Part shown: in pieces, positions 812 through 19,105 of the stretch
Position numbering within the stretch: the first letter of the stretch is position 1
Layout: each line of letters begins with the position of its first letter
Sequence record: OR532817.1
Strand: one strand, 5' to 3'
Length of the DNA stretch: 64,000 nucleotides
Program-made: the position numbers and the translations under genes
Notes under the pieces: generated by a model
The model's database searches: none
The model's input: only the letters and a program-made list of their open reading frames with translations
Told to the model about the DNA's origin: nothing

Positions 812-860
812 ACTGAATACTTTTCCCCACGCTCTGGCGTCTCCGGTTCCTCCCGTCTAT
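812..860 (-). ncRNA. Two-hairpin sRNA-like element, copy 1
   Basis: Minus-strand TTGACT (889-894)/TATAAT (867-872); core hairpin ACGC-CAGA-GCGT then GGGG; no ORF. Confidence 0.5.
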
Positions 861-962
861 ATAAACATTATACAGTACTGAAATATTAAGTCAATACTAT
901 TTTTTCAAAAAGATTAAAATAAAATACTTGCAATCCTGATATTATTATATTATAATGTTTAC

Positions 963-1010
963 AGTACTGAGAAAGTGCTTTTGCCCGCTAGGGTGCGGGG
1001 GAGTATGCGT
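963..1010 (+). ncRNA. Two-hairpin sRNA-like element, copy 2
   Basis: TTGCAA (928)-17-TATAAT (951); AGTACT-GAGAA-AGTGCT; GCCC-GCTA-GGGT-GCGG. Confidence 0.55.
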
Positions 1011-1014
1011 TAAA

Positions 1015-1029
1015 TGAGAATGATAATCA
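1015..1029. promoter_or_regulatory. Fur-box-like site between convergent sRNA copies 2 and 3
   Basis: TGAGAATGATAATCA. Confidence 0.7.
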
Positions 1030-1039
1030 TTTACAGTAC

Positions 1040-1080
1040 TGGACGGATTTTCCCACCCTCGGGGGTCTCTTTTTGTCTAT
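1040..1080 (-). ncRNA. Two-hairpin sRNA-like element, copy 3
   Basis: Minus-strand TTGATA (1109-1114)/TATAAT (1087-1092); ACCC-CCGA-GGGT-GGGA. Confidence 0.5.
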
Positions 1081-1119
1081 GTGGTAATTATACAGTACTG
1101 GAATACTATATCAAGTCTC

Positions 1120-1134
1120 TTTACAAATCTTTAC
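1120..1134. promoter_or_regulatory. CpxR-type tandem box
   Basis: TTTACAAATCTTTAC. Confidence 0.55.
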
Positions 1135-1228
1135 AATCCACCCGGGGAGATTTATCTTTACAATAAAAGTACTTGCATAATTCTTTCAGTACTGCTATTA
1201 TATATTCATACCAAACAGGAGAACTACC

Positions 1229-1399
1229 ATGAAATACGCGTACTCTTATTTTATTGTAAACGGTGAACGTTTGACCATCGGCCAGGCAGCGGTAAAGCAT
1301 GAAATCATTTGCGATGATCTGGCAAAGATGCTACCAGGTGAAACGCAAGAGTTTTACAAGGGCTTTCAGAAAGTCACTGTAACACGTTGTGAAGATTGA
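1229..1399 (+). CDS. Hypothetical protein (56 aa, not in ORF track)
   Basis: Promoter at 1173, RBS CAGGAG, MKYAYSYFIVNGE...RCED*. Confidence 0.75.
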   Translation: MKYAYSYFIVNGERLTIGQAAVKHEIICDDLAKMLPGETQEFYKGFQKVTVTRCED

Positions 1400-1464
1400 T
1401 CCAGTATTAGGGGTAGGAATACCCCTAAAACGTCCTGTAACGCATTATAAGAGGTTTTTATAAT

Positions 1465-1692
1465 ATGGCTATAGAAGTTAACGCTGGGGATATAAAGGCG
1501 GCTGTACTGCGTACCCTGAAAGCATACGGCAGAAAGCTGAATGATCGCAACGTTCCCTATTATTTCCTTGCTGCTACTCATAAAATGGCAATCGCTGAGG
1601 CTCGCGGGTGGCTGAATGATCGCAGTACTGTAAAGAGTACCAGAACAAGAAACGCAATTGAGCGATGGATAAAAGAATTAAATCATTTCTAA
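1465..1692 (+). CDS. Hypothetical protein
   Basis: 75-aa ORF with plausible composition; weak RBS. Confidence 0.6.
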   Translation: MAIEVNAGDIKAAVLRTLKAYGRKLNDRNVPYYFLAATHKMAIAEARGWLNDRSTVKSTRTRNAIERWIKELNHF

Positions 1693-1764
1693 TAGTTCAG
1701 TTATGGAATCAGTACTGATTCCCTGTTTAGTACTGAAATTATAAGGGGAGTTAATTAATTCCCC

Positions 1765-1779
1765 TTTACAAATCTTTAC
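1765..1779. promoter_or_regulatory. CpxR-type tandem box
   Basis: TTTACAAATCTTTAC, 10 bp upstream of the -35 of sRNA copy 4. Confidence 0.6.
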
Positions 1780-1823
1780 AAAAGAATGGTTGACATAGTA
1801 TCCCAGTACTGGTATTATGTATT

Positions 1824-1872
1824 CATAGACAGAACAAGTCTTTGGCCCACCGGGTGCGGAGGAGTATCTATT
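1824..1872 (+). ncRNA. Two-hairpin sRNA-like element, copy 4
   Basis: TTGACA (1790)-17-TATTAT; AGAC-AGAACAA-GTCT; GCCC-ACC-GGGT-GCGGAGGAGTATCTAT. Confidence 0.65.
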
Positions 1873-1880
1873 AGATTGAA

Positions 1881-1901
1881 TGATAATGATAATGATTCTC
1901 A
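1881..1901. promoter_or_regulatory. Overlapping Fur-box-like sites between convergent sRNA copies 4 and 5
   Basis: TGATAATGATAATGATTCTCA. Confidence 0.75.
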
Positions 1902-1914
1902 TTTACTGTACTGA

Positions 1915-1965
1915 ATATATTTCCGCACCCTTTTGGGCTTTTCGATTACTTTCTACTTGTTAATA
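1915..1965 (-). ncRNA. Two-hairpin sRNA-like element, copy 5
   Basis: Minus-strand TTGCAT...TATACT; GCCC-AAAA-GGGT-GCGGAA. Confidence 0.5.
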
Positions 1966-1998
1966 AGTATACCATAATCAGTACTGAATGCAATGGTC

Positions 1999-2013
1999 TT
2001 TACAAATCTTTAC
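1999..2013. promoter_or_regulatory. CpxR-type tandem box
   Basis: TTTACAAATCTTTAC. Confidence 0.55.
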
Positions 2014-2110
2014 AAAAGAAAATAATTATAAAAAGTACTGAAAAAGTACTTGACGCAATAATGTAGTACTGGCATAATACATCCATACCAAACAGAACGG
2101 AGTAACTAAA

Positions 2111-2398
2111 ATGTTTAATGAAAATGATCATATTGTTAAAGAGTTTTCTTTCAGTAAGCCTATCCATTTAGAAAACGGTGAAACGCTGGACAATAAATTT
2201 TATGGTAGTATTATTAAGCGTTATACATCGCGGAGTAGTACTGGAATTTTGTGGGAAGTGAATAAACAGTACAATGGTAATTCGCTGGTTGTCAATGAGT
2301 GGGAAAGTTATGCAGTAGCTGAAATGGATTTTTCTAACTTTATTACTGAATCTTTGAACGATGATATCTTTTACAAGTTCACAGCGGAAAGGGTTTAA
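2111..2398 (+). CDS. Hypothetical protein
   Basis: Own promoter at 2049, RBS GGAG. Confidence 0.8.
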   Translation: MFNENDHIVKEFSFSKPIHLENGETLDNKFYGSIIKRYTSRSSTGILWEVNKQYNGNSLVVNEWESYAVAEMDFSNFITESLNDDIFYKFTAERV

Positions 2399-2518
2399 AA
2401 AGTTTTAAAGAGTACTTGACAACATAAACCAGTACTGTATAATGTATTGCATAGAAAGGAGATTCCATTATTCTGGAATCTCCGATAAAACAAACTAATC
2501 GGTGAAGGAGTAATTGCC

Positions 2519-3127
2519 ATGAATGTTATCGATACCATCTATTCTAAATCTTTTATCGAACTGAATGAAGAGCAGAAAGAAAAAGCAATTGATATTATGC
2601 GGGAAATTGAAAATCAGGACACTACCCCTTATTGGTCAATTGATCTTGTTAACCAGATGAAAGAAAAATTAGTACAATATGGAATTGATGATTCTGAAAT
2701 TTTGTGGTCTGGATTTTGTTCACAGGGAGACGGTGCAAGTATCAGCACTGAATCAATTAATACTGAGATGTTTTTACGTAAGGTAAAAGCGTGGTCTAAA
2801 TTTAAAGGCTTGCGTAAATTCATCTCCGAAGAAACTATTTCTTTGAGTGTTCGCCGGGTGAGCCATCATTACTATCATGAATATTGTGTTAGTGGTAATG
2901 TTGAAATTGCTTATTGTGAAGATGTTACCGCCAAACAAGAACAATTAGTGGACGATTTGCAAACTTTGATCACAAATACTATTCGTGATTTGTCTCGTGA
3001 ATTGTATAAAGATTTAGGGAATGAAAACGATTATCATAACAGCGATGAAGCATTGATTGAATTGATTAATGCAAATGATTATCATTTCAAAGTTAACAGT
3101 ACTGGCGACGTGTTAGGACTTGCATAA
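2519..3127 (+). CDS. Hypothetical protein, WSGFxSQGDGA motif family
   Basis: Promoter 2416, leader hairpin 2458-2483, RBS AAGGAG; motif recalled from phage/plasmid hypotheticals. Confidence 0.8.
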   Translation: MNVIDTIYSKSFIELNEEQKEKAIDIMREIENQDTTPYWSIDLVNQMKEKLVQYGIDDSEILWSGFCSQGDGASISTESINTEMFLRKVKAWSKFKGLRKFISEETISLSVRRVSHHYYHEYCVSGNVEIAYCEDVTAKQEQLVDDLQTLITNTIRDLSRELYKDLGNENDYHNSDEALIELINANDYHFKVNSTGDVLGLA

Positions 3128-3215
3128 TGACTAAATTATATATTCGTTTCTGTTTTGCCTGGTACTTGTATAATCTGCAAAATGGTTATCCAGGGAAATA
3201 GTACTGATATACTGT

Positions 3216-3247
3216 AAAACGTCCTGTAAACGATTATGGGACGTTTT
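3216..3247. repeat. AAAACGTCC-N14-GGACGTTTT inverted repeat
   Basis: Near-identical copy at 11407-11438; partial copies 1427-1457 and 16062-16092. Confidence 0.85.
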
Positions 3248-3318
3248 AAGGAATATTAGTACAATGTTAGTACTGAATGATTTAAACGCCTTACAGTGGC
3301 TTACAGGAGATTATATCA

Positions 3319-3531
3319 ATGGCTAAATGTACTATTTGTAATAAAGAAATTATTCTTTCCCCTAGTGCAGAGGAACGAGCTAAAAAGTACGGCGGAAAAG
3401 CCAGCGACTACACAAAACTCTTTACTACTCATGCGACTTGTGCTGTTAATAAAAGTTCAAATGCCAACATTGAATTAATGCGTAAAATCAATAATGATTT
3501 TATTAATTCCTGTAAAAAAGTACTTGCATAA
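3319..3531 (+). CDS. Small putative Zn-binding protein
   Basis: CxxC (CTIC) and HxxC (HATC); RBS CAGGAG. Confidence 0.75.
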   Translation: MAKCTICNKEIILSPSAEERAKKYGGKASDYTKLFTTHATCAVNKSSNANIELMRKINNDFINSCKKVLA

Positions 3532-3610
3532 AGTTTTCAGTACTGGCATAATACATCTATACCAAACAAAAAGGGAATCAGTGCTGATTCCAAGATAAGG
3601 AGTAACTGAA

Positions 3611-3925
3611 ATGAGTACTAAAGAACTGAATGTAACTACCAACACTTATAAGATGTTAGGCGGTCGGATGTTGCGTGATTATTACGCAATTGAAATCGAA
3701 GAACGCGAATTACCCGAAGATAAACACTATTGGGAAAGTGGTGTGAGTCCTCTGTTACGGGTAACAACGTCTAAGCATGTTTTCTTTACTTCTCGCATTC
3801 ATGTTAATAAGCGTGTCGAATTGACTTTCTCGTTTAGTGGAAGCTATAAAGATTATGAGATATTAAATGATCATATCGTTATCAGCAAATTTATTCAAAT
3901 GTATGGTGCGGATTCTTTACTTTAA
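3611..3925 (+). CDS. Hypothetical protein
   Basis: Promoter 3524, leader hairpin, RBS AAGGAG. Confidence 0.8.
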   Translation: MSTKELNVTTNTYKMLGGRMLRDYYAIEIEERELPEDKHYWESGVSPLLRVTTSKHVFFTSRIHVNKRVELTFSFSGSYKDYEILNDHIVISKFIQMYGADSLL

Positions 3926-4011
3926 GTACTTGACAATTCGATCCAGTACTGTATAATGTATTACACCAAAGGGGATACATAGTGTATCCCTGATATAAAG
4001 GAGTAGCGACT

Positions 4012-4371
4012 ATGCGAGCTTTTAACGTTTATAAGAATGACAAGAAAATTGACGTTGTTTATTATTCCGAAGTAATGACGGCAAAAGAAGTAACCGATTT
4101 GCTGAATAGCCGTGGTGAATACAACGGCGAAGTAAAAGCATTTCGGTCATTGAATAGTGCGAATATTCGCACAGTACTGAAAAATGCTAAAACTGTTTTA
4201 TTCAATGATGACGAATATTTTAATAAAGATGTTACGGGTATTAAAAACCTGGAAGATCTGAAAAGCCTTATTGGTATTAAAGGCAACGTATACAAAGTGG
4301 GGGAAGTCGGATCTCGCCATGAATATAAATTAGCCAATAGTGATTATAAATTTTCAATCCTGGTAATGTAA
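4012..4371 (+). CDS. Hypothetical protein
   Basis: Promoter 3930, leader hairpin, RBS AAGGAG. Confidence 0.8.
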   Translation: MRAFNVYKNDKKIDVVYYSEVMTAKEVTDLLNSRGEYNGEVKAFRSLNSANIRTVLKNAKTVLFNDDEYFNKDVTGIKNLEDLKSLIGIKGNVYKVGEVGSRHEYKLANSDYKFSILVM

Positions 4372-4372
4372 T

Positions 4373-4576
4373 ATGAAAGTTTATATTTTGGAAGTGGAAG
4401 AATGTAATTCATATTCTTACAGTGGTACACTATCACGCGTGGAGGCTGTATTTGCCAGTGAGAAAGAAGCCCACGCCGCCGGGATTTAAAAAGTAAAAGA
4501 AGGCTATGAAGGTTATAGCGTCGATGCTTATGATATTCAGGGCGATCTTTCAGTACTGTTAAAGGAATTAAAATAA
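4373..4576 (+). pseudogene. Small ORF interrupted by an in-frame TAA
   Basis: MKVYILEV...HAAGI*(4487-4489)KVKEGYEG...LKELK*; frame continues to a stop overlapping the next ATG. Confidence 0.65.
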
Positions 4577-4791
4577 TGGAATATGAATTAATATATCATA
4601 CTCGATTATATGTTATTTTCTTTGAAATAACGTTATGGGGAGTAAAGGCAACGATTTATAATAAAGACGTTGCCGACGATCAAGAATGGATCGTTGTTGC
4701 AGAAGATAAAACGCCTCATGATTCGTTAAGTACTGATTTTAAATTATGCCGTGAATTATTAAAGAGTATAAGAAAAGATAATAATATATAA
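4576..4791 (+). CDS. Hypothetical protein
   Basis: TAATG coupling, RBS AAGGA. Confidence 0.7.
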   Translation: MEYELIYHTRLYVIFFEITLWGVKATIYNKDVADDQEWIVVAEDKTPHDSLSTDFKLCRELLKSIRKDNNI

Positions 4792-4794
4792 AAC

Positions 4795-4822
4795 AAAGGG
4801 GATCAATCGATCCCCTTTTTGT
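4795..4822. terminator. Bidirectional intrinsic terminator
   Basis: AAAGGGGATC-AATC-GATCCCCTTTTTT. Confidence 0.85.
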
Positions 4823-4842
4823 TTCAGTACTGAATTAATAAT

Positions 4843-4905
4843 AGATACACTACGGCACCCTATGGGTCAGTGCCTTGTGTCCGGCTTATGTGGTTATTAT
4901 GCCAG
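4843..4905 (-). ncRNA. Two-hairpin sRNA-like element, copy 6
   Basis: Minus-strand TTGACT-17-CATAAT; GCC-GGACACAA-GGC; ACCC-ATA-GGGT-GCCGTAGTGTATCTAT; points into the 4795 terminator. Confidence 0.65.
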
Positions 4906-4934
4906 TACTGCGAACATAAGTCAATAGATGATTT

Positions 4935-4949
4935 GTAAAGAAGTGTAAA
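4935..4949. promoter_or_regulatory. CpxR-type tandem box
   Basis: GTAAA-GAAGT-GTAAA, 11 bp upstream of the minus-strand -35 of copy 6. Confidence 0.6.
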
Positions 4950-5152
4950 TGCACAGGAAGCGTTTTAAGGCGTTAATCTGTTGCTGGTGGCTGATAGTAC
5001 AGAGAAGTGTTTTAGATTGATTGTAGGCCGTTGTAGGCGTTTATAGATAGTAAAGTACTGATAATGTTTAATGATCCTGGTATGTGCAAATTATTTTAAT
5101 TTTTTTCGTATTGGGTATTGACGGATTATGTCAGTACTGGCATAATGTATCA

Positions 5153-5220
5153 CATAGAGCGACGGGCAAGACAAGTAGTCAACCTGTAAGACATACGAAA
5201 ACCAGGTGACGTTGCACTGA
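5153..5220 (+). ncRNA. Candidate three-way-junction small RNA
   Basis: TTGACG (5118)-17-CATAAT; stems GCGACG/CGTTGC, GAC/GTC, ACCTG/CAGGT; no ORF. Confidence 0.45.
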
Positions 5221-5286
5221 TTCAGTACTGAATAATACATAACATCTAAATGTTGACAGTACTAAAAAATGTAGTATAATGATTAA

Positions 5287-5460
5287 CAGAAAGAAGCAAT
5301 CCAGTAAGCATGGATTAGTGATAAACGTAGGCCGGAATCACGAAAAACTTTCAAGGAAATACCCTTGTATAAAAAGGGAAGCGTTAAGCGTAGAACGTAA
5401 ACGCGAAAATCCTAGCCTTGAACTGAAAAAGTAAACAAGGCAATTACAGAAAAAAGATTT
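5287..5460 (+). ncRNA. Candidate multi-hairpin A-rich RNA or long leader
   Basis: TTGACA (5253)/TATAAT (5275); stems AATCCA/TGGATT, GTGAT/ATCAC, CAAGG/CCTTG, CCTTG/CAAGG; no + strand ORF. Confidence 0.35.
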
Positions 5461-5552
5461 AAAAAAGTAGTTGACAAGTACTAACGAGAATGAGATAATC
5501 TCTCTCGTTGAAACAAACAAACAATCTTAATCAAAACTTAAAGGTGAATAAA

Positions 5553-6053
5553 ATGGCTAAACTGAATTCTGTTGTTGTTGCTCTGATCGCTGGTGATATC
5601 GCTGCTCTGAATGCTTCTTTCGCGTCGGTATCGATGGAAGATATGAAAACTGTTCGTAACAACTTTAACGATTTTTACTCTAAATTCAAAGCTGCAAATG
5701 AAGCGGCGGAAGCGGCGGCAAAAGAGCGTAAAGCACAGATCGAAACCGAAACGAAAGAACTGGTAGACGCCCTGGTAACTGCTGGCCTGGATCTGGAAAT
5801 GGCCGCCGAAGTCGCCAGCCAGAAAATGGCGGTGAAATATCCCGAACTGGCTCCGAAGTCGGGAACTGGTAAAACCTGGTCGTTTGAAACCGTATTCGTT
5901 AACGTTGACGGTGAAAAACTGGAAATTGGCACCAAAGGCAACAAAGGCAGTATGAAAGCACTGGCGGCGGCACGCGAAGCAATTGCCGCTGGCAAATACA
6001 AAGATCGTGCTGAATGGATCGCCGCTCACGCCTGGACTGAAACCGAAGCGTAA
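5553..6053 (+). CDS. H-NS-like protein (putative)
   Basis: N-terminal coiled-coil pattern resembles H-NS (SMEDMKT...EAAEAAAKERKAQI...LVTAGLDLE vs TLETLEE...AAAAEVEERTRKL...LIADGIDPN); GKTWS vs H-NS TKTWT; strongly biased codons; promoter 5471; RBS AAGGTG. Confidence 0.5.
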   Translation: MAKLNSVVVALIAGDIAALNASFASVSMEDMKTVRNNFNDFYSKFKAANEAAEAAAKERKAQIETETKELVDALVTAGLDLEMAAEVASQKMAVKYPELAPKSGTGKTWSFETVFVNVDGEKLEIGTKGNKGSMKALAAAREAIAAGKYKDRAEWIAAHAWTETEA

Positions 6054-6075
6054 TAATTCAGTACTGTAATAATTA

Positions 6076-6105
6076 GCCTCCTGTAATTAGGAGGCTTTTT
6101 ATTTT
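6076..6105 (+). terminator. Intrinsic terminator
   Basis: GCCTCCT-GTAATT-AGGAGGC-TTTTTATTTT. Confidence 0.9.
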
Positions 6106-6189
6106 GTTCAAAAAAATATTTTAATTTATTTTTTGAACGGACTTAAAAAATCGGATATAATAATAAAGGGTGTTAATTACAGAGACCCC

Positions 6190-6300
6190 CATAGTGTTCG
6201 CTACGCTCACATAATGATCTTACTCGTTGCACTCGTAAGATCATTATCCAATCGGCCTTTGGCTATTTCTTTTTGATTTCCTACGGAAACCAAACGAAAC
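6190..6300. repeat. Serial hairpin array
   Basis: GTG-TTCGCTACGCT-CAC; ATAATGATCTTAC-TCGTTGCACTC-GTAAGATCATTAT; TTTGATTTC-CTACG-GAAACCAAA. Confidence 0.6.
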
Positions 6301-6669
6301 CACCAGCAAAGGCAGATCCCATTATTTGATTTAGTTAGTACTGCAATGAATTAGTTTAATCGCACTACAAAGCAATCAATCCCTTTTGTAATAGCTCATA
6401 GAACGCAATAAGACGCGTTTAAATGACTTCCCTATGTAATGCCATTCCTTTTTAATAAGTCCTCTTAAAACGCGTTACAGTTCGTTATACGGCGTTTAAT
6501 AATACTCATCATTTCTTTTTCAAAAAGTACTTGCATTAATGATCCAGTACTGCAATAATGTACTCACTGAAACGCAGTAAGCGAAGTAAGTAAATGCAAA
6601 TAAGTACTTGACAAAGTGTTGTAGTACTGGCATAATGAATACATCAAAACGATTAAGGAGAAACACCAA

Positions 6670-7143: not shown

Positions 7144-7216
7144 TTAATAATTGATTAGCCATCAATAAAGCTGGTGGCTAATAGAATATTAATAACCTGT
7201 TAGGAGAATAATCTTT

Positions 7217-8740: not shown

Positions 8741-8751
8741 ATTATATATTC

Positions 8752-8802
8752 ATACCACAGAGCAAGTGGTTTAGCCCACAGGGTGCCGAGATGTATCTAT
8801 AG
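8752..8802 (+). ncRNA. Two-hairpin sRNA-like element, copy 7
   Basis: TTGACT-17-TATTAT; CCAC-AGAGCAA-GTGG; GCCC-ACA-GGGT-GCCGAGATGTATCTATA. Confidence 0.7.
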
Positions 8803-8896
8803 TTTAATAATTTGAAGTACTGAAAAATAATTATAAAAAGTACTTGCTAGACGTGAATTCTTTTAAGAATTCACTTGTATTTGTGATTCAGTACTG
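8781..8896 (+). repeat. 116-bp near-identical direct repeat, copy A
   Basis: Matches 19085-19200; includes GTGAATTCTT-TT-AAGAATTCAC. Confidence 0.9.
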
Positions 8897-10141: not shown

Positions 10142-10187
10142 AAAACCAGTACTTGATTTAATTATTGAGTACTGGTATTATATATTC

Positions 10188-10232
10188 ATTGGCAGATAAG
10201 CCATAGCCCACAGGGTGGGGAAGTGTATCTAT
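10188..10232 (+). ncRNA. Two-hairpin sRNA-like element, copy 8
   Basis: TGGC-AGATAA-GCCA; GCCC-ACA-GGGT-GGGGAAGTGTATCTATA. Confidence 0.7.
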
Positions 10233-10354
10233 ATGATTTAAGTACTGATTTGTTTTTTATTTCAAAATAACGCTTGCATTACTTTTGGGTTAGTGTATAA
10301 TGTTTTATATCGAGAGGGGAATTGTTTTCCCCTCCACATTAAGGAAATGAAATT

Positions 10355-10537: not shown

Positions 10538-10597
10538 GTACTGAAAAGTTTTCAAATAAGGGGTTGACTTCGGTCGACCCTTTTGCTATTATATATT

Positions 10598-10643
10598 CAT
10601 TGGCAGATAAGCCGCAGCCCACAGGGTGCCGAGATGTATCTAT
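10598..10643 (+). ncRNA. Two-hairpin sRNA-like element, copy 9
   Basis: TTGACT (10564)-17-TATTAT; GGC-AGATAA-GCC; GCCC-ACA-GGGT-GCCGAGATGTATCTATA. Confidence 0.7.
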
Positions 10644-10917
10644 AGTTTATTGAATTGTAGTACAGAAAAATATTTCTTGCATAATTCATTTCTTATGATA
10701 TAATAGTAATCACATAAATTAATTGGAGTGAACAAAAATGTTATTAGATTGGCTCAATACTTTATCCCCTGCTGCTGGCCGTCGCTGGGCTATCGGTTCG
10801 TCGGTTGCCATCGTTGTAGGCGTCATTGTACTTTTAGTGATGATTTTCTAAAAAGTACTTGCTTTAATGATCCAGTACTGTATAATGTACTTATACCAAA
10901 TAACAGGAGTAAAACTG

Positions 10918-11235: not shown

Positions 11236-11239
11236 AAAA

Positions 11240-12133: not shown

Positions 12134-12135
12134 AG

Positions 12136-12166
12136 AAAAAGGGGAGACAACAAGTCTCCCTTTTTT
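12136..12166. terminator. Bidirectional intrinsic terminator
   Basis: AAAAAGGGGAGAC-AACAA-GTCTCCCTTTTTT. Confidence 0.85.
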
Positions 12167-12188
12167 GTATTCAGTACTATATATATTT

Positions 12189-12236
12189 TAGATACAATTT
12201 CGCACCCTGTGGGTTAGTAGCTTGTTCTGCTTTATG
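12189..12236 (-). ncRNA. Two-hairpin sRNA-like element, copy 10
   Basis: Minus-strand TTGACA-17-TATAAT; AGC-AGAACAA-GCT; ACCC-ACA-GGGT-GCGAAATTGTATCTA; points into the 12136 terminator. Confidence 0.7.
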
Positions 12237-12361
12237 TAGTAATTATATGATAAAGCTGGTGGCTTGTCAACACTTATTTTAAAATAAAAAGTACTGAATA
12301 GTACTTGCAAAAAGTATTCAGTACTGTATAATGTTTGTATTGAGATTAAGGAGTACTTACT

Positions 12362-12901: not shown

Positions 12902-12953
12902 TGATTCAGTACTGATATAATGAATTAAATTAACCAGGAGGAAATATCTTAAA

Positions 12954-13082: not shown

Positions 13083-13166
13083 TACTTGACAATATAATCC
13101 AGTACTGTATAATGTTTATCAAAGGGAATGAATTATTCATTCCCGATTAATCAAAGGAGTTTTGCC

Positions 13167-13391
13167 ATGATCTATATTATCAAAGTATCCCCGACTGTAG
13201 GCAAATCAGAAGTTGTAGCCGTTATCACTTCCCTGGAAGCGAAAAATCTTCATACCCCGTTTAATGTATGGGTGGAGGATAATTTCGGCCAATTCAGTAC
13301 TGCTGAATATATCGAACAATTCGCTGTCCCGGATACTGGCAAAATCAAAGTGGATCGTATCCTGGATTTTGATAACAGTAATTACTTTTAA
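13167..13391 (+). CDS. Hypothetical protein
   Basis: Start moved to 13167; promoter, hairpin, RBS AAGGAG. Confidence 0.8.
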   Translation: MIYIIKVSPTVGKSEVVAVITSLEAKNLHTPFNVWVEDNFGQFSTAEYIEQFAVPDTGKIKVDRILDFDNSNYF

Positions 13392-13477
13392 AAACGTTTG
13401 ACAACTGATTTAAGTACTGTATAATGTTTATCAAAGGGAATGAAATATTCATTCCCGATTAATCAAAGGGGTTTATC

Positions 13478-13624
13478 ATGAAAGAGTATATCTTTGAAGT
13501 AACTTTCACCTTTGGCCCGCACCAACTGATCCGGTCTTCTGGCTACAACCGCGAACAAGCATTCAGCAACCTTCGCCGTATGTACCCCAATGTCGTGACC
13601 TGGGTCAAGTGTGAAGAAGCATAA
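13478..13624 (+). CDS. Hypothetical protein (48 aa, not in track)
   Basis: Cassette duplicated from 13103-13160; RBS AAGGGG. Confidence 0.7.
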   Translation: MKEYIFEVTFTFGPHQLIRSSGYNREQAFSNLRRMYPNVVTWVKCEEA

Positions 13625-13704
13625 AATAATTAGTCAGTACTATTGACAACGGGTGATAGTACTGCTATAATTATTTTAACTTATACGGAATGGAGTTAAA
13701 ACAA

Positions 13705-13941
13705 ATGTTCAGTGTCAGCAAACAAGGCGACAAATTTCTGGTTCAATACCATCATTTTGATCTGGTATACACTCAGCCAGATTGTGTATTCAGTACTCAG
13801 GAAGGTGCCGAAAAGCACAAAAAAGCCTTGATCGAAAATAGCAACAGTGGTACATTAGATTTCATCCAACAGTACTGGAATGAATCTAAGCTGGTGGACG
13901 GTTATTCCAACACAGTTTATTATGTAGGTATCACTGATTAA
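13705..13941 (+). CDS. Hypothetical protein
   Basis: Promoter, RBS TGGAG. Confidence 0.75.
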   Translation: MFSVSKQGDKFLVQYHHFDLVYTQPDCVFSTQEGAEKHKKALIENSNSGTLDFIQQYWNESKLVDGYSNTVYYVGITD

Positions 13942-13956
13942 TCAGGAGTACTGTTA

Positions 13957-14040
13957 ATGTATATGCCAATTATCATACCGTTAGCAGTACTGTTAATCGC
14001 CGCCGTTATCTGCGAACAATATCATTTGTTAGGAATGTAA
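13957..14040 (+). CDS. Hydrophobic microprotein (27 aa)
   Basis: RBS CAGGAG; MYMPIIIPLAVLLIAAVIC. Confidence 0.5.
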   Translation: MYMPIIIPLAVLLIAAVICEQYHLLGM

Positions 14041-14043
14041 ACT

Positions 14044-14214
14044 ATGATTCAATGTGAATTGTCAGTACTGATCACACTGTTCTATATGTTGGGGCAAAAG
14101 AAACAAGATATTTCTGGTGATAATGCATTATTGTATCAATCATTAGACCAATGGCAACGATCTGAATTAAGCAATGCATGGGCGAAAGGCTACAACGACA
14201 GTACTGCAAAATAA
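14044..14214 (+). CDS. Hypothetical protein (56 aa)
   Basis: Follows the previous ORF; RBS AGGA. Confidence 0.55.
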   Translation: MIQCELSVLITLFYMLGQKKQDISGDNALLYQSLDQWQRSELSNAWAKGYNDSTAK

Positions 14215-14262
14215 TTTAAAAAAAGGGGTTGACTTATGTCAGCCCTTTTGTTATTATTAGTA

Positions 14263-14312
14263 CATAGCAAGAACAATGCTCAAGCCCACAGGGTGCGGAG
14301 GTGTATCTATAG
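14263..14312 (+). ncRNA. Two-hairpin sRNA-like element, copy 11
   Basis: TTGACT (14229); AGCA-AGAACAA-TGCT; GCCC-ACA-GGGT-GCGGAGGTGTATCTATA. Confidence 0.7.
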
Positions 14313-14400
14313 TTTATGTTGGTCTGAATCATTAATTTTCTTGACAATTGGTTTAGTACTGGATATAATAGCCGCCATTGAATACATGAGGATTTTAAAA

Positions 14401-14667
14401 ATGGCCTATCATACACCACATAGACACTTCATTGATAAACGCGGTATGGCTTTTAAAGCAATGAGTGACAATCGTAACACACAAATGTACTTTAAAGATA
14501 TGACGTTAGAAGAAGCAATTGAAGCCGTAAGGAATGATCGTAAGCTTTCCAAGAAAGTTGCATCAGTACTTAATGCTTTTTGGTTTGAACGTACTACCAA
14601 CAAAGAATACAAAGAAAAGATGATTGCACTTGGTAAAGTAGTACGAGAAGAAAAATTATATCTTTAA
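14401..14667 (+). CDS. Hypothetical protein
   Basis: Start moved to 14401 (RBS GAGGA, own promoter). Confidence 0.75.
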   Translation: MAYHTPHRHFIDKRGMAFKAMSDNRNTQMYFKDMTLEEAIEAVRNDRKLSKKVASVLNAFWFERTTNKEYKEKMIALGKVVREEKLYL

Positions 14668-14730
14668 GTACTTGACTATGTGATTCAGTACTGCTATTAT
14701 ATATTCATACCAATTAAGGAGATTGACCAA

Positions 14731-14838
14731 ATGAAACAAGCAAAATTTAATTCAGAAATTAAAGCAGCAAAAGCACACAAAGTACAGTTAGCAGTACTGG
14801 TTATTGTATCAATCTTTTTGCTGTGCAACATCGGCTAA
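14731..14838 (+). CDS. Small membrane protein (35 aa)
   Basis: Promoter 14672, RBS AAGGAG, hydrophobic C-terminus. Confidence 0.65.
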   Translation: MKQAKFNSEIKAAKAHKVQLAVLVIVSIFLLCNIG

Positions 14839-14918
14839 AATAATTATTACAGTACTATTGACAACACGTGATAGTACTGGTATAATTACTTTACCAAATC
14901 AAAAAGGAGTAACCAAAA

Positions 14919-15194
14919 ATGCGGATTAAACTTACCAGTGATGAGATTCATTCAGTACTTACTACCAATATGCAGGACTGGAAAAAGTACGCTGATATCG
15001 AAGAAGTCCAGGAACTCAATGATGATTTGAGTGTAGATGAAATTATCACTATTTGCTCATCTCAATTCTTTGATGATATCAATGATGAAGAGCAAGATGT
15101 ATTTGATATCATGGATAAACATTTTATTGCGTATGATGTTTTTCCGTACACTCGCCAGGCTTATATTCTTATTCACAACATTTATAACAAATAA
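14919..15194 (+). CDS. Acidic hypothetical protein
   Basis: Promoter, RBS AAGGAG; D/E-rich. Confidence 0.8.
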   Translation: MRIKLTSDEIHSVLTTNMQDWKKYADIEEVQELNDDLSVDEIITICSSQFFDDINDEEQDVFDIMDKHFIAYDVFPYTRQAYILIHNIYNK

Positions 15195-15206
15195 GGAATA
15201 ATAATC

Positions 15207-15572
15207 ATGGAAAAAGAATTTAAAATCAAATACAATATCAGTACTGATGGCGGTTTTGAAGTTCCAGAAGAAGATCAAGAACGCCTTAATGATGTTATTA
15301 TGATTGACATTTCAAATAAAATCATTCAAGGCTACCGCGAAGGTGAATTGTGTGAATCGTTGATGGATCAATTCGATGAAGTGGAAACGTTTTATCGTGG
15401 CTGGTGGAGTATCGAAGAAGTTCACAAAGTACACGAATACCGCGTATTCTGGATTAACGGCGTTAATGATATCGAAGATATCATTGTAAAAGAAAGTAGT
15501 GAATCCGCCGCCATTCAGTACTTTAAAGATCACTACCCAAACAAACGTTATCACCATTTAGAAAAAATTTAA
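15207..15572 (+). CDS. Hypothetical protein
   Basis: RBS AAGGA. Confidence 0.8.
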   Translation: MEKEFKIKYNISTDGGFEVPEEDQERLNDVIMIDISNKIIQGYREGELCESLMDQFDEVETFYRGWWSIEEVHKVHEYRVFWINGVNDIEDIIVKESSESAAIQYFKDHYPNKRYHHLEKI

Positions 15573-15659
15573 AAAGTACTTGACACCTAATATCAGTACT
15601 GATATATTAATACGCATAGGGGCAAACAACTTGCCCCACCAAACAAAAGGAACTACCAA

Positions 15660-16016
15660 ATGATTACTAAATTCTACGCTACTCGTGAACTGGCTCGGAT
15701 CGTCGCTCGTGAAGAAGGTGAAACCTTCAAAGATATGGGTAAAGATTCCCCTGCTGGTCAACGCTGGGCAGTACTGTTCCGCGAGGTCAAAGACCTGGTA
15801 GAAAACGCTAAAGCCGTTGAAATGAACGTTCCCACCAAAGAAGATAAAGATCTGACTGATGCCCTCGCCGCCGCATTCTCCGCGATGGATAAAGCCGCTG
15901 CGGTAGTACTGAAAGTGCCGGAATTCGTAACCCGCAAAGTGCATTCAGTACTACAAAATAAATTCAACGGTAAACAGGTTCAGGTGTTTACTAAACGTAA
16001 AATTCCGGTCATGTAA
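15660..16016 (+). CDS. Hypothetical protein (ATRxxAR...RWAV motif)
   Basis: Promoter 15580, leader hairpin, biased codons. Confidence 0.8.
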   Translation: MITKFYATRELARIVAREEGETFKDMGKDSPAGQRWAVLFREVKDLVENAKAVEMNVPTKEDKDLTDALAAAFSAMDKAAAVVLKVPEFVTRKVHSVLQNKFNGKQVQVFTKRKIPVM

Positions 16017-16094
16017 AATCTGACTATTACAGTACTAACAAAGGGGCTTCAATGCCCCTTTAAACGTCCTGTAAACCATTCTAAGAGGTTTTGC

Positions 16095-16343
16095 ATGAAA
16101 AAGGTACAACTACACAAAGGAGTAATGAAAGTTCATTATAATGCCCCGCAACGCATTATAGATAGAGCCATTGAACTAGCCAATCAATATCTAGCTGGTG
16201 GATTAACTCCCAGGAAGTTAAGCAACGGGAAGTTATATGTAATCAACGTTGATACTAATAATCGTATAGTAATCAAAGGTGAAAGCATATCACTGTATGA
16301 ACATCAACAGTATAACAAGAAAGTAAAAAATATTAGTAGATAA
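16095..16343 (+). CDS. ParE/RelE-like toxin-fold protein (putative)
   Basis: PRKL...VINV...RIVI...LYEHQQYN resembles the PRRL/RWRLL/LMSHE.YN pattern; probable start 16125 (RBS AAGGAG). Confidence 0.45.
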   Translation: MKKVQLHKGVMKVHYNAPQRIIDRAIELANQYLAGGLTPRKLSNGKLYVINVDTNNRIVIKGESISLYEHQQYNKKVKNISR

Positions 16344-16422
16344 GTGTTGACAACTGATTTCAGTACTACCATAATGTATACATACAAGGCAATACCACCT
16401 AATAACATAGGAGTAACTGAAA

Positions 16423-16845
16423 ATGAAAAAATCCACTAAAATTATCTTAGGTGTATTTGTTGTTCCGGCAGTAGCCTTTTTTACTTGTGCTATGATTTTT
16501 GGTGATGCTTCTCGGGTTGCCGCAAAAATCGAAAAAGAAAAACAAGTCCAGGTTGAAGTTAAGAAAGAAGAAAAGAAAAATTATAACACTGTATGGGAAG
16601 CAATTTGCCATACCAGTAATGGTAAAAGGATCTCCATCCTTACAGCGATGAATAATGGAAAATCAATCGTCGGAAATGAATATATGGAAGTTACTTCCAG
16701 TACTGGTAAAGAATTTGTAATGACGAACTATAATAACAATAATGTTGCAATTGTTACACAGGATTTTAAAGGCAATGCAGTACTGGAATATCATACGGAA
16801 TATGAAGTAATATTTGCAAAATGCACGTTTGAATGGGGTGCATAA
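16423..16845 (+). CDS. N-terminally membrane-anchored protein
   Basis: Basic start then IILGVFVVPAVAFFTCAMIF; promoter, RBS. Confidence 0.75.
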   Translation: MKKSTKIILGVFVVPAVAFFTCAMIFGDASRVAAKIEKEKQVQVEVKKEEKKNYNTVWEAICHTSNGKRISILTAMNNGKSIVGNEYMEVTSSTGKEFVMTNYNNNNVAIVTQDFKGNAVLEYHTEYEVIFAKCTFEWGA

Positions 16846-16902
16846 AAATAAACAAAAAATCAAAAAAGGGGTTGACATATGTCAGCCCCTTTGCTATTAT
16901 TA

Positions 16903-16950
16903 ATATCAAGAAAACAAGCTAACCCACAGGGTGCATAAATGTATCTATAG
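16903..16950 (+). ncRNA. Two-hairpin sRNA-like element, copy 12
   Basis: TTGACA (16872); AAAACAA; ACCC-ACA-GGGT-GCATAAATGTATCTATA; hairpin 1 weak. Confidence 0.6.
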
Positions 16951-17025
16951 TTTATTAAAGAATTTTAGTACTTGACAACGTAGTACATCAGTACTAAAAT
17001 ATCTACATACAAAGGAGATTACCAA

Positions 17026-17610
17026 ATGAACAAACATCTTAAAGTACTGAATAAATGTAAATCCAATACCGAAATGTTACTGTACTGTTACAAAAATTTA
17101 ATTAAACTCGGTAAAGGTTCATCCCGCACGGTATTTTTGTTAACAAAAAATAAAGTACTGAAAGTTGCTCATAACCATATTGGCAACCAACAGAATACGG
17201 CGGAAATCACTGCCTGGCTGTATGTTGATTATGATCGCTATTATAATAAACGTTTTTTCGCTAAAGTGTTCCCTGATATGTCGCATTTTAAAGATGTATA
17301 CATAGTACAGGAGTACTGCGACAATATCAGTACTAAAGAAGCGAAGCCATACATCGAACATTACTTGACACCTCGCACTATTGAAAATGAGCGTGCTAAA
17401 CGCTTCCACACGGCGTTAAGAGATGTAGACAATACCCTTAACTATAAAACGCTGGTGGACTTAAACATGGGCAATATAGGCCGTTCTGTAAGGGGTGCAA
17501 TCAAACTACGTGACTATGGATTATCTGAACATATTGCTGAACAGTACCGAGAAGCCCGCTTCCAATACCAGAAGCTCAAAAGTATTAGTAAAATAAGTAT
17601 TGATTTATAA
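17026..17610 (+). CDS. Ser/Thr protein kinase (phage type)
   Basis: LGKGSSRTV Gly-loop, VLK lysine, helix-C E, DLNMGN catalytic loop, DYG. Confidence 0.8.
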   Translation: MNKHLKVLNKCKSNTEMLLYCYKNLIKLGKGSSRTVFLLTKNKVLKVAHNHIGNQQNTAEITAWLYVDYDRYYNKRFFAKVFPDMSHFKDVYIVQEYCDNISTKEAKPYIEHYLTPRTIENERAKRFHTALRDVDNTLNYKTLVDLNMGNIGRSVRGAIKLRDYGLSEHIAEQYREARFQYQKLKSISKISIDL

Positions 17611-17677
17611 TTTCAGTACTGGTATAGTACTTTCACAGGGGAGATAATCTCCCCCAAATCACAAAGGAGATTTTACC

Positions 17678-18040
17678 ATGAGTACTAAACCATTCGTTAC
17701 TACCCGTTCAAATCTCACCGAAATCTATGTACACGGTGGGTATGAGGAAACGTATGTCACTGGTATTATGGTAGAATTCCATCAGGGTTATCGGTTTATG
17801 TTGGTAGATTCAGAAATCTATCATACCCAACAAGATAAACATGGTTATGTCAATAAGTACTCCACCGATGAAGTACTGAAACGCCTGGATAACAAAATTA
17901 AACAAATTCAAAAACATCTTGACAACGGCGGAAAACTTAATCATTTACTTTGGGATAGCTTAGATCCCTGCTACGGTTCGGATGCATATGGTAAAAGCCG
18001 TGACACTGCAATGAAAGTACTTAAAGATTATTTCTTTTAA
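17678..18040 (+). CDS. Hypothetical protein
   Basis: Promoter, hairpin, RBS AAGGAG. Confidence 0.8.
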   Translation: MSTKPFVTTRSNLTEIYVHGGYEETYVTGIMVEFHQGYRFMLVDSEIYHTQQDKHGYVNKYSTDEVLKRLDNKIKQIQKHLDNGGKLNHLLWDSLDPCYGSDAYGKSRDTAMKVLKDYFF

Positions 18041-18121
18041 GTATTGACAAGCAATTCCAGTACTGTATAATATATTTCACAAGGGGAACATACCGTTCCC
18101 CGATTCAAGGAGATTAACCAA

Positions 18122-18304
18122 ATGAATAAATTCACAGTATTCGAAACAATCGCAGCAAACGGTGCTCCGATGTACTATGCTGTCAAAGGTGATACAGTAC
18201 TGGTATCCGGCAACGGTTGTCAATCATTTAAACCTTCTAACGTTTCCCCGTATTATGTCAGAACTAATATGGCGTATAGTCATATGCAAAAAATTACTCA
18301 ATAA
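18122..18304 (+). CDS. Hypothetical protein
   Basis: Promoter, hairpin, RBS AAGGAG. Confidence 0.8.
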   Translation: MNKFTVFETIAANGAPMYYAVKGDTVLVSGNGCQSFKPSNVSPYYVRTNMAYSHMQKITQ

Positions 18305-18386
18305 CCTATTGACATAGGTTATCAGTACTGGCATAATGTATTTCAAGGAGGTAATAACACCTCCTACCTTCAAGGAGTAGTTGACT

Positions 18387-18623
18387 ATGAATACTAAAGA
18401 AATGCTTTGTGAGTTCGCCAGTAACAATCTTGGCAACGCCGCTTTCATTGATGGTTTTAATTACGTAGCAACTCGTGATCAAGAAGGTAAAGTATTCGTT
18501 AAAGATCGTATGGGCTTTTCTATCCAGGTTCAATCCGGTACTGCAAGCCATATCGACGGCATGAATGTATGGGCTGCTACTATCCCCGGTGATGGAACAT
18601 ATCATTTCCGTATCGTAAAATAA
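18387..18623 (+). CDS. Hypothetical protein
   Basis: Promoter, hairpin, RBS AAGGAG. Confidence 0.8.
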   Translation: MNTKEMLCEFASNNLGNAAFIDGFNYVATRDQEGKVFVKDRMGFSIQVQSGTASHIDGMNVWAATIPGDGTYHFRIVK

Positions 18624-18722
18624 TTTAAAAAGTACTGGACAATACAATCCAGTACTGTATAATGTTTTGCATACACAAGAGATTCCAGTACTGGAATCTC
18701 TAATCTAAAGGAGAATACCAAA

Positions 18723-19004
18723 ATGATTAACGGCACTCTGATTAACTATGCAAAACGCCGTGATGTAGAAATAGAAGTACTGAAAGCAGGCGAAGTTGAC
18801 GACGACGCCCAGGTATGGTTCTACACCGCAGACAATGATTGTGAACCAGTACTGATGTATCTGATTAATAATGATGGTTCTCTTACTTATCGTAGCAAAC
18901 TGATGAAGTCCCTGGAAGATATGCCAGCACATATCAATAATAAAGAAGTGCTGAAACGCGTAATCTGCTACATCTCAGACCAGCACAAAGCGGATATGAT
19001 GTAA
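18723..19004 (+). CDS. Hypothetical protein
   Basis: Promoter, 24-bp palindromic leader, RBS AAGGAG. Confidence 0.8.
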   Translation: MINGTLINYAKRRDVEIEVLKAGEVDDDAQVWFYTADNDCEPVLMYLINNDGSLTYRSKLMKSLEDMPAHINNKEVLKRVICYISDQHKADMM

Positions 19005-19054
19005 TCTTTACAAATATGGGGGTTGACTAATGTCAGCCCTATTGGTATTATATA

Positions 19055-19105
19055 TTCAATCCAGCGAACTGGTCTAACCCTCAAGGGTGCCGAGATGTAT
19101 CTATA
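19055..19105 (+). ncRNA. Two-hairpin sRNA-like element, copy 13
   Basis: TTGACT (19023); CCAG-CGAA-CTGG; ACCC-TCAA-GGGT-GCCGAGATGTATCTATA. Confidence 0.65.

Follow-up and report, generated by a model that had tools for sequence, protein, structure and literature searches.

Introduction

In T4-like phages, promoter-early stem-loop (PeSL) cassettes combine a strong sigma70 promoter and a terminator stem-loop that overlaps it (Arbiol et al. 2010, PMC2839356). They are located between the small open reading frames (ORFs) of hyperplastic regions, and recombination between copies shuffles the genes (PMC2839356; Comeau et al. 2014, PMC4122927). The put RNA of phage HK022 is about 70 nt long, is composed of two long stems and a triplex, and binds the beta' zinc-binding domain (PMC9378689). 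In the Pseudomonas jumbo phage PA5oct, the terminal repeat was shown to be transcribed early with abundant non-coding RNAs (ncRNAs), and ncRNA001 and ncRNA002 are single-copy RNAs of 236 and 451 nt, respectively (PMC7318152). In this study, we analyzed a stretch of 64,000 nucleotides (hereafter, the window) from sequence record OR532817.1 of Klebsiella phage RCIP0023, which contains thirteen copies of a promoter-coupled RNA element of ~55-65 nt.

The element belongs to a clade-specific family of promoter-coupled RNA modules in the early terminal repeat of RaK2-like jumbo phages. A preliminary description made from the sequence had proposed a multi-copy, promoter-coupled family that is constrained at the RNA level, and the present analysis confirmed that such a family is genuine.

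Results

Copies of the element and their promoters

The preliminary description had listed thirteen copies on both strands. A covariance model was built from the 13 window copies and used for the window, the genome and the relatives. It recovered exactly these 13, all within 801-19116, with 37.8-61 bits and E-values of 1e-5 to 2e-11, and detected nothing further, neither between 20 and 64 kb of the window nor in the other 286 kb of RCIP0023 (330 kb in all). The parts of the element are, in order, a short hairpin (hairpin 1), a linker, a nearly invariant core, RCCC-N3/4-GGGUGC-N6-GUAUCUAUAG, and usually an AGUACUG motif. On the DNA, the copies share a TTGAC(A/T)-N17-TATTAT/TATAAT promoter, a start at about CAT, the purine-loop hairpin, the linker, RCCC-N3/4-GGGT and GC-N5-TGTATCTATAG. 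The copies are as follows.

Copy 1: 801..866, minus strand, 42.7 bits; promoter 894-867 (TTGACT/TATAAT); divergent, with the compensatory hairpin 2 ACGC-CAGA-GCGU; runs into the Fur-box-like palindrome 790-808
Copy 2: 957..1022, plus strand, 37.8 bits; promoter 928-956; hairpin 1 AGUAC/GUGCU; convergent with copy 3
Copy 3: 1027..1092, minus strand, 44.2 bits; promoter 1114-1087; without hairpin 1; convergent with copy 2
Copy 4: 1818..1883, plus strand, 59.4 bits; promoter 1790-1818; hairpin 1 AGAC/GUCU; convergent with copy 5
Copy 5: 1899..1964, minus strand, 47.1 bits; weaker promoter TTGCAT-N17-TATGGT, by eye; no clear hairpin 1
Copy 6: 4829..4894, minus strand, 49.6 bits; promoter 4924-4896; stand-alone, without an ORF: promoter, element, AGUACUG, bidirectional terminator 4795-4818
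Copy 7: 8747..8812, plus strand, 59.5 bits; terminator-embedded promoter 8717-8745; hairpin 1 CCAC/GUGG; then terminator-like hairpin 8853-8874, second promoter and gene 8933-9094
Copy 8: 10179..10244, plus strand, 53.3 bits; weaker promoter, by eye; hairpin 1 UGGC/GCCA; left boundary of an indel
Copy 9: 10590..10655, plus strand, 53.6 bits; promoter 10564-10592; hairpin 1 UGGC/GCCG (with a U.G pair); right boundary of the indel
Copy 10: 12176..12241, minus strand, 57.7 bits; promoter 12270-12242 with 12 of 12 matches; stand-alone, runs into terminator 12142-12160
Copy 11: 14257..14322, plus strand, 61 bits; hairpin 1 AGCA/UGCU; then second promoter 14341-14369 and gene
Copy 12: 16895..16960, plus strand, 58.9 bits; A-rich stretch without hairpin 1; then second promoter 16972-17000 and gene 17026-17610
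Copy 13: 19051..19116, plus strand, 51.7 bits; hairpin 1 CCAG-CGAA-CUGG; then terminator-like hairpin 19157-19178, second promoter and gene 19286-19582

A consensus scan placed a sigma70-like promoter with at least 9 of 12 matches, and in several cases 11-12, directly upstream of 11 of the 13 copies. The weaker promoters of copies 1899- and 10179+ were seen by eye, and the earlier statement that each copy directly follows its own sigma70 promoter therefore holds. The element begins 2-5 nt from the predicted +1, and every listed copy stands in sense orientation after the promoter-like sequence.

Location in the terminal repeat

Window 700-5700 corresponds with 100% identity to positions 124,700-129,700 of OR532817.1, the 350,174-bp genome of RCIP0023. 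The same 5 kb is 93-97% identical to RaK2, K64-1, Muenster and KP13-7, jumbo myophages of the genus Alcyoneusvirus, and RCIP0023 is RaK2-like. The Muenster record labels the homologous stretch a terminal repeat of 20,030 bp (a PhageTerm prediction). G+C content along the window is 34-39% up to ~20 kb and 26-30% thereafter. Because of the homology to Muenster and this matching change of composition, the copies can be placed in a long direct terminal repeat that would make up the first ~20 kb of the window. The G+C step itself, from ~36% to ~28%, lies at ~19900-20100, where the repeat meets the unique region. The repeat contains ~45 small ORFs, mostly unannotated and all on the plus strand. The corresponding repeat block of phage CBB is regarded as an early region (PMC5259590). 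Assignment to the early region of a jumbo phage thus agrees with the RaK2-like terminal repeat.

Distribution in related phages

When viral contigs were scanned for the exact pattern, the core was present in RaK2 and in other contigs of 350-380 kb. The covariance-model search of related jumbo phages, which had been proposed as a check, yielded 80 copies in the loci of the relatives; these make 74 distinct rows in the model alignment and 73 full-length sequences in separate scripts. When one element was compared by sensitive blastn with 50,697 phage records, 18 records matched, all of them RaK2-like jumbo phages, with hosts in the genera Klebsiella, Escherichia, Pectobacterium, Cronobacter and Erwinia. 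For phages of hosts other than Klebsiella, the alignment is limited to the ~30-nt core (88-97% identity), and the sole cross-genus match of a 5-kb megablast was a 54-nt stretch over an element. Conservation of the core thus reaches far beyond that of its surroundings.

Known RNA families gave no match, as the preliminary description had supposed. Rfam over the 64 kb found nothing at gathering thresholds and, at E <= 5, noise only, none of it on an element. ARAGORN found 0 tRNA or tmRNA genes, and the best hit in the whole HK022 genome, put included, by cmsearch without filters was 13 bits (E 4.3). The covariance model had no match in the PA5oct repeat including its ncRNAs, and no element was found in 5,426 E. 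coli genomes. A pattern scan of bacterial genomes (596 Gb) gave chance matches only, since its 14 specified bases are too few. The element is not described, and its core sequence not found, in the papers searched, which include those on CBB, RaK2-related phages and PA5oct. A plain terminator class had also been considered; none of the 13 elements is called as an intrinsic terminator (G+C-rich stem and U-run) on its own strand, and the only call falls on the reverse complement of copy 1027- (1050-1065, plus strand). Apparently, the element is an undescribed RNA family of RaK2-like jumbo phages.

Constraint on the RNA

Hairpin 1 is misregistered in the model alignment (54% paired), because loop and linker lengths vary. 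For this reason its covariation was assessed on the 25 distinct members with a 6-nt loop, which were anchored on the loop motif independently of folding, with 5 nt taken on each side. The three loop-proximal pairs are formed in 24, 24 and 25 of these sequences and the fourth in 17. Each loop-proximal position has 3-4 pair types, and AU, CG, GC and UG are all present. The covariation score was 0.868 against 0.224 +/- 0.047 in shuffled sequences (0 of 500 reach it) and was at most 0.22 when the partner was slid. Among 73 distinct members the hairpin-1 region has a mean of -2.86 kcal/mol, against -1.43 +/- 0.16 for dinucleotide shuffles, and hairpin 1 is present in 56. Automatic extraction gave 28 stems, of which ~25 are truly different once spurious ones are discounted. 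The loops are purine-rich, mostly AGAACAA, AGAUAA, GAGAAA and GCGAAA. Covariation of hairpin 1, claimed previously, is thus a property of the family, and in the window copies 16895+, 1027- and 1899- have no convincing hairpin 1.

Hairpin 2, RCCC-N3/4-GGGT with the compensatory variant ACGC/GCGT, is as it had been described. It is nearly invariant, with C-G in 58-72 of 74 rows and 90% of cells paired, and the compensatory variants CGC/GCG (copy 801-) and CCU/AGG are rare. For the outer pair, 30 sequences have G.U and 24 have A-U, and such a G.U pair is possible on the transcribed strand only. The two-hairpin layout proposed earlier stands for hairpins 1 and 2 and had missed a third hairpin, GGGUGS/SYRUCY across a 6-nt loop (GGGUGC/GUAUCU), which is paired in 92% of cells, compared with 30-65% for slid partners. 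Nearly all variation in its 3' arm consists of U/C and A/G exchanges, with which pairing to G and U is kept. Because hairpins 2 and 3 share the GGGU, they cannot coexist. Their energies are alike (medians of -3.7 and -4.4 kcal/mol, respectively), so in folding models the core looks like a two-state element. RNAalifold on a MAFFT alignment missed hairpins 1 and 2 because of register shifts, and it indicated hairpin 3.

Thus, the constraint acts on the sense RNA, because there are compensatory changes, strand-specific G.U pairs and a strict orientation after the promoter. The case for the element rests on covariation and conservation, not on thermodynamic stability.

Other roles for parts of the element were considered and rejected. 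A mini-ORF in the tail, (A/G/U)UG-UAU-CUA-UAG, has its start turned into AUC in UCCGUCC-type variants, and a GGAG resembling a Shine-Dalgarno (SD) sequence is found in only 16 of 73 members. GGA loops of the CsrA type occur in only 32 of 73. Hairpin 3 is unlikely to be an attenuator because the U-rich tract does not abut the stem.

Genomic settings and predicted transcripts

The settings were derived from printed flanks of all copies and a crude classifier. The following neighboring features are needed to describe them.

14222..14249, plus strand: terminator hairpin holding the -35 box of the copy 11 promoter, GGGGTTGAC-N4-GTCAGCCC with a T-run as spacer
4795..4818, both strands: bidirectional intrinsic terminator found by scan, common to the plus-strand operon ending at 4791 and copy 6
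12142..12160, both strands: intrinsic terminator common to the plus-strand operon ending at 12133 and copy 10; minus strand by scan, bidirectional as judged by eye
1016..1034, no strand: Fur-box-like palindrome GAGAATGATAATCATTTAC between convergent copies 2 and 3
790-808, 1882-1906 and 498-516, no strand: further Fur-box-like palindromes

In the gene-proximal setting (A), the order is a terminator hairpin bearing the -35 box, the -10 box, the element, an A/T-rich AGTACT spacer, a second sigma70 promoter, an SD sequence and a gene. The -35-bearing hairpin of copy 11, which the terminator scan gives as GGGGTTGAC-N4-GTCAGCCCC with a T-run, has counterparts of the same design at 16865-16892 and 19019-19040 and, by eye, at ~8711-8735 and ~10558-10582. 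Terminator-embedded promoters thus serve ~5 of the 13 copies, and the remaining copies have AGTACT-type promoters. In the stand-alone setting (B), represented by 4829- and 12176-, promoter and element are followed by (U)AGUACUG... and an intrinsic terminator that is shared with the convergent operon, so that the RNAs predicted for this setting are gene-less and ~95-110 nt long; that these two minus-strand copies run into bidirectional terminators had been noticed before. The 3' module of this setting, UAGUACUGUACAAAUAAAC plus terminator, recurs in several distant phages. Setting C consists of convergent pairs, 957+/1027- and 1818+/1899- in the window and at least 6 pairs in other phages, often with a Fur-box-like palindrome between the elements.

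Among 76 contexts, 20 were convergent, 17 had a terminator within 70 nt, 20 had an SD sequence and ATG, and 19 were unclassified. If the terminator-like hairpins after 8747+ and 19051+ are counted, 9 of the 13 window copies are delimited by a terminator or by a convergent partner before any gene. The six plus-strand copies outside convergent pairs have an SD sequence and a gene 50-110 nt downstream, nearly always past a second promoter, so that the gene is independent of the promoter of the element; 8747+ and 19051+ are two of these six. The claim that the family is ORF-less is therefore correct for the element, which has no conserved ORF, and not for the transcripts, since these six copies lead to an SD sequence and a gene.

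A U-tailed terminator forms the 3' end of 4829-, 12176- and relatives, and is absent in at least four window copies. The predicted gene-less stand-alone RNAs consist of element, spacer and terminator and are ~95-130 nt long, which makes the discrete size of 45-60 nt given earlier doubtful. Judging from these contexts, about half the copies are predicted to yield short gene-less transcripts. The predicted 96-nt RNA of copy 6 folds with a z-score of -4.0. The 1824-1950 RNA, reading through from copy 4 into copy 5, has -41 kcal/mol (z -5.0) and ends in a U-run, and the 963-1078 transcript of copy 2 has hairpin 1 and a long hairpin (z -1.9). Terminator-like hairpins crowd the minus strand of the repeat region, an arrangement suggesting that leftward transcription is designed to terminate.

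The unit of promoter and element is an autonomous cassette beside operon terminators, because 20 convergent and 17 terminator contexts are found among the 76 against only 20 with SD and ATG, because second promoters precede the genes, and because stand-alone units recur in distant phages.

Recombination between copies

In RCIP0023, copies 10179+ and 10590+ flank the small gene 10355-10537. At this place in RaK2 and Muenster there is one hybrid unit, made of the first promoter and the tail of the second element, and the gene is absent. The junction of this 411-bp indel is located inside the shared TATTATATATTCATTGGCAGATAAGCC, so the crossover lies within common sequence. As PeSL cassettes do, the unit of promoter and element thus recombines with its paralogues.

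Other features of the early region

The Fur-box-like palindromes have 16-17 of 19 matches to GATAATGATAATCATTATC. Six sites with at most 3 mismatches occur in the window against 0.26 expected, and one more in the whole genome. They cluster in window zones 490-620, 786-808, 1011-1034 and 1876-1906, and palindromes of this type lie between convergent elements also in distant relatives (L004, L005, L018). Their role could be that of a Fur roadblock or of an operator bound by a phage protein, unless they are just hairpin apices.

In the window AGTACT occurs 260 times, with 149 occurrences in the first 20 kb, and the RCIP0023 genome has 954 copies against 118 expected (8.1x; the next 6-bp palindrome reaches 1.7x). 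Its sites adjoin the 5' side of -35 boxes (AGTACTTGACA), fall within promoter spacers (CAGTACTGnTATAAT) and follow most elements at a distance of 5-20 nt. This excess, together with the placement at promoters, suggests a site for a DNA-binding protein at early promoters. Another motif, CTTTACAAATCTTTACAA, is found just 5' of -35 boxes at 747, 1119, 1764, 1998, 8690 and 10126 (plus strand) and 4933 (minus strand); 8 matches were counted where 0.58 would be expected. The motif may serve as an UP-element or bind a factor, and ATCTTTACAA is kept upstream of element promoters in other genera as well.

Messenger RNAs (mRNAs) from AGTACT-type promoters have strong G+C hairpins directly past +1 (CAUCAAAGGGAAUGAAUGAUUCAUUCCC...), at ~2458-2483, 3972-3990, 7518-7537, 8295-8315, 9555-9573 and 11845-11862. 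These hairpins score as terminators on the opposite strand, so they may both stabilize 5' ends and block leftward transcription. The ORF-poor stretches 4930-5550 and 6100-6650 carry near-consensus promoters at 5118, 5253, 5471 and 6133 and strong hairpins such as AUAAUGAUCUUACUCG...CGUAAGAUCAUUAU; they may be further early ncRNAs, recalling the repeat ncRNAs of PA5oct.

Pfam searches of 20 repeat-encoded proteins gave only H-NS-like, ParE/RelE-like, weak kinase-like and DUF7300 matches. The domain-bearing early proteins are encoded at window 5553-6050, 16095-16340, 17026-17607 and 3611-3922. An H-NS-like N-terminal domain has an E-value of 4e-6, and a ParE/RelE-like toxin domain, YafQ-like according to the Muenster annotators, 2e-10; the protein-kinase-like match is weak, below the Pfam cut-off. 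The coding sequence (CDS) RCIP0023_00257 (14236-14667) starts inside the terminator/promoter hairpin and spans the element 14257-14322 and the promoter 14341-14369. Its start is probably mis-called, and the real gene would begin near 14390. In the RCIP0023 genome, CGCGCG, CGATCG, CCTAGG, CAGCTG, AGGCCT and AGCGCT each occur 0 times against 5-25 expected, which looks like restriction-site avoidance.

Discussion

Early expression of the cassettes is plausible, because their promoters are near-consensus, the region is homologous to the Muenster terminal repeat, and the repeat of PA5oct is transcribed early. We tentatively favor the view that the cassettes are early ncRNA genes whose invariant core binds one conserved partner, with the copies acting in trans; we hold it as a leading explanation that falls short of being probable outright. 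It is based on the constraint on the sense RNA, the autonomy of the unit, its confinement to the early repeat and its clade specificity. In such a scheme, the host RNA polymerase would transcribe the cassettes from the first DNA that enters the cell. The products would be sibling RNAs of ~95-130 nt, or shorter after processing. Hairpin 1, at the 5' end, would protect and present the RNA, and the invariant two-state core would be the putative binding site of one conserved host or phage protein. The many copies would act in trans by dosage, through titration or ribonucleoprotein formation.

Several observations weigh against early ncRNA genes. Identity between copies could partly stem from gene conversion. 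The stems are tiny (3-5 bp), folding of the whole element is unremarkable (mean z -0.9), and ~14 of 73 members, including 16895+, have only an unstructured A-rich stretch in place of hairpin 1. Transcripts of the convergent pairs would bury the core in a long duplex, which fits a terminator or insulator role better, and the ends of the ~95-130-nt RNAs are themselves predicted. The complement of the tail occurs at chance level in the window, with a single exact site inside a CDS. Among the 20 repeat-encoded proteins, Pfam found no RNA-binding domain and thus no candidate for the partner. In four window copies the next gene is reached without an intervening terminator, and the relative L018:12591 is a plain 5' untranslated region (UTR), so there is still room for a role in cis.

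A more specific proposal, possible and on balance doubtful, is that a dozen sibling RNAs flood the new host and that the core captures a host factor, or else that the element is a miniature, factor-independent, put-like polymerase modifier. Candidates for the captured factor are an RNA-binding regulator, a ribonuclease, RNA polymerase or a defense sensor.

If the element acts in cis, it would be a 5' leader. The 5' hairpin would then shield the transcript from RppH/RNase E-type decay, like ompA-type stem-loops, and the core would be bound by an mRNA stability or processing factor. The constant distance of 2-5 nt from the predicted +1 agrees with this, and the other early promoter class also opens mRNAs with a strong 5' hairpin, which appears to be a general design here. 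Six window copies precede genes, and L018:12591 is directly a 5' UTR. Past the tail of gene-proximal copies the sequence UAG|UUUA resembles RN|WUU, which we take to be the RNase E consensus. However, no gene follows the element in at least half of the 76 contexts, and the gene-proximal copies nearly always have a second promoter that gives an element-less mRNA. Stems of 3-5 bp would be weak protectors, and the invariant core is left unexplained. We therefore consider a cis-acting leader unlikely, though worth keeping in mind.

PeSL-type recombination cassettes would require even less of the RNA: the hairpins would have no function beyond initiation or termination, and the repeats would be kept for promoter, terminator and gene shuffling. 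PeSL-type terminator-embedded promoters are indeed present, the 411-bp gene indel is bounded by two copies with its crossover in shared sequence, and the family occurs nowhere but in a hyperplastic stretch of small ORFs. Gene conversion can account for identity, but not for the compensation in hairpin 1, the sense-strand G.U pairs or the transitions in hairpin 3. The core is also kept across genera whose flanks cannot be aligned, and defined PeSLs end at an SD sequence and start codon without such an RNA module. Recombination as the sole function is accordingly quite unlikely.

We regard as improbable that the element modifies RNA polymerase as HK022 put or lambda nut/boxB does, causing resistance to pausing or termination through the RNA, with or without a phage protein on the hairpin-1 loop. 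The purine-rich hairpin-1 loops resemble boxB loops, and many terminators lie downstream in the region. The element is also promoter-proximal with two hairpins, as putL is (PMC9378689). Yet put has ~70 nt with two long stems and a triplex, whereas the stems of the element are 3-5 bp, and the covariance model finds nothing in HK022. Sequences like boxA (GCTCTTTAACAA, at most 2 mismatches) are not above chance, with 9 against 8.9 expected and none beside an element on the right strand. Minus-strand and convergent copies would drive antisense transcription and head-on collisions on a terminator-rich strand, and every operon already has its own promoters.

The preliminary description had inferred abundant decoys for Hfq or MazF, which cuts at ACA; decoys for another toxin or for a CRISPR nuclease, like pseudo-ToxI or Racr, belong to the same proposal. 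The RNAs are multi-copy, early and ORF-less and have A-rich loops, some of them with ACA, and stand-alone copies end in U-tailed terminators as Hfq-dependent small RNAs (sRNAs) do. The ACA, however, is conserved in neither loop: the hairpin-2 loop has it in only ~40% of 73 members, with AUA and 4-nt loops common, and most hairpin-1 loops are GAGAAA, GCGAAA or AGAUAA. Loops of 4-8 nt hold at most two ARN triplets (the motif of the Hfq distal face) and are too short for an (ARN)n tract. It is the CCC/GGGUGC core that is invariant, not the loops. No repeat-array or ToxI-like organization was seen, although similarity to ToxI and CRISPR repeats was not rigorously compared. Hfq and MazF as specific targets are not supported, and this specific version of the decoy proposal seems very improbable.

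A DNA-level role of the ACCC-N3/4-GGGT palindrome and its flanks, as operator or cruciform, is hardly credible: hairpin 2 is a near-perfect DNA palindrome and AGTACT, CTTTACAAATCTTTACAA and Fur-like boxes cluster around the same promoters, but the orientation relative to the promoter is strictly conserved, G.U pairs are A.C mismatches on the other strand, both half-sites change together in one genome (copy 801-), and the asymmetric tail is conserved.

Little is known, to our knowledge, about the first minutes of infection in jumbo phages that rely on the host RNA polymerase. The element offers a compact and easily testable motif, with ~13 copies in the first-entering DNA, that is conserved where the phage genomes no longer align. 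If it acts in trans, an RNA layer would be added to host takeover or counter-defense; if a host factor is captured, this would be an RNA-based host-takeover or anti-defense device without a described homologue; and an action in cis would make it a novel type of 5' transcript tag. The covariance model lets annotators find units that are now blank or overlaid by doubtful ORFs, such as CDS 14236-14667.

Comparison with known systems

HK022 putL and putR resemble the element in being cis-encoded RNAs of two stem-loops that need no ORF, just past an early host-type promoter in the case of putL. The element differs by its 13 copies on both strands, its orientation towards terminators and its stems of 3-5 bp. 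The lambda nut site (boxA and boxB) likewise places a short purine-loop hairpin beside a conserved linear sequence in early transcripts. However, the loops of the element are 6-8 nt, not GNRA-like pentaloops, the copy number and convergent layout do not fit, and no N-like protein was identified.

Sibling sRNAs of bacteria such as Qrr1-5 and OmrA/B, along with the short phage transcripts lambda OOP and the PR'-tR' 6S RNA, resemble the element in their organization as several paralogous short units: each unit is transcribed from a promoter of its own, an invariant stretch is common to all, and the stand-alone copies end in an intrinsic terminator. Unlike them, the element has no target complementarity found in the window, its invariant stretch is partly base-paired, and many copies run towards a gene without a terminator. 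In the related jumbo phage PA5oct, the ncRNAs likewise come from stretches of the long terminal repeat that have no ORF and are highly transcribed, but they are longer (236/451 nt), single-copy and not matched by the covariance model.

PeSLs have several features in common with the element. Both are repeated units of ~100 bp with a strong sigma70 early promoter and a terminator stem-loop overlapping the promoter (~5 of 13 copies here), both are clustered among the small ORFs of a hyperplastic early region, and in both, recombination between copies gains or loses an intervening ORF, which is the 411-bp indel in this case. Whereas PeSLs end at the SD sequence and start codon of the next gene, the element has a conserved, covarying RNA module of ~60 nt, usually followed by a second promoter and often by no gene. 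There is no sequence similarity between them, and the phage clade is that of the RaK2-like jumbo phages. The element may be viewed as a mobile early regulatory cassette of the PeSL type, in which a conserved structured RNA is either a later acquisition or the original nucleus. The idea of mobile promoter-terminator cassettes, known from T4-like phages, thus applies to jumbo phages as well, with a transcribed and structured part as an addition.

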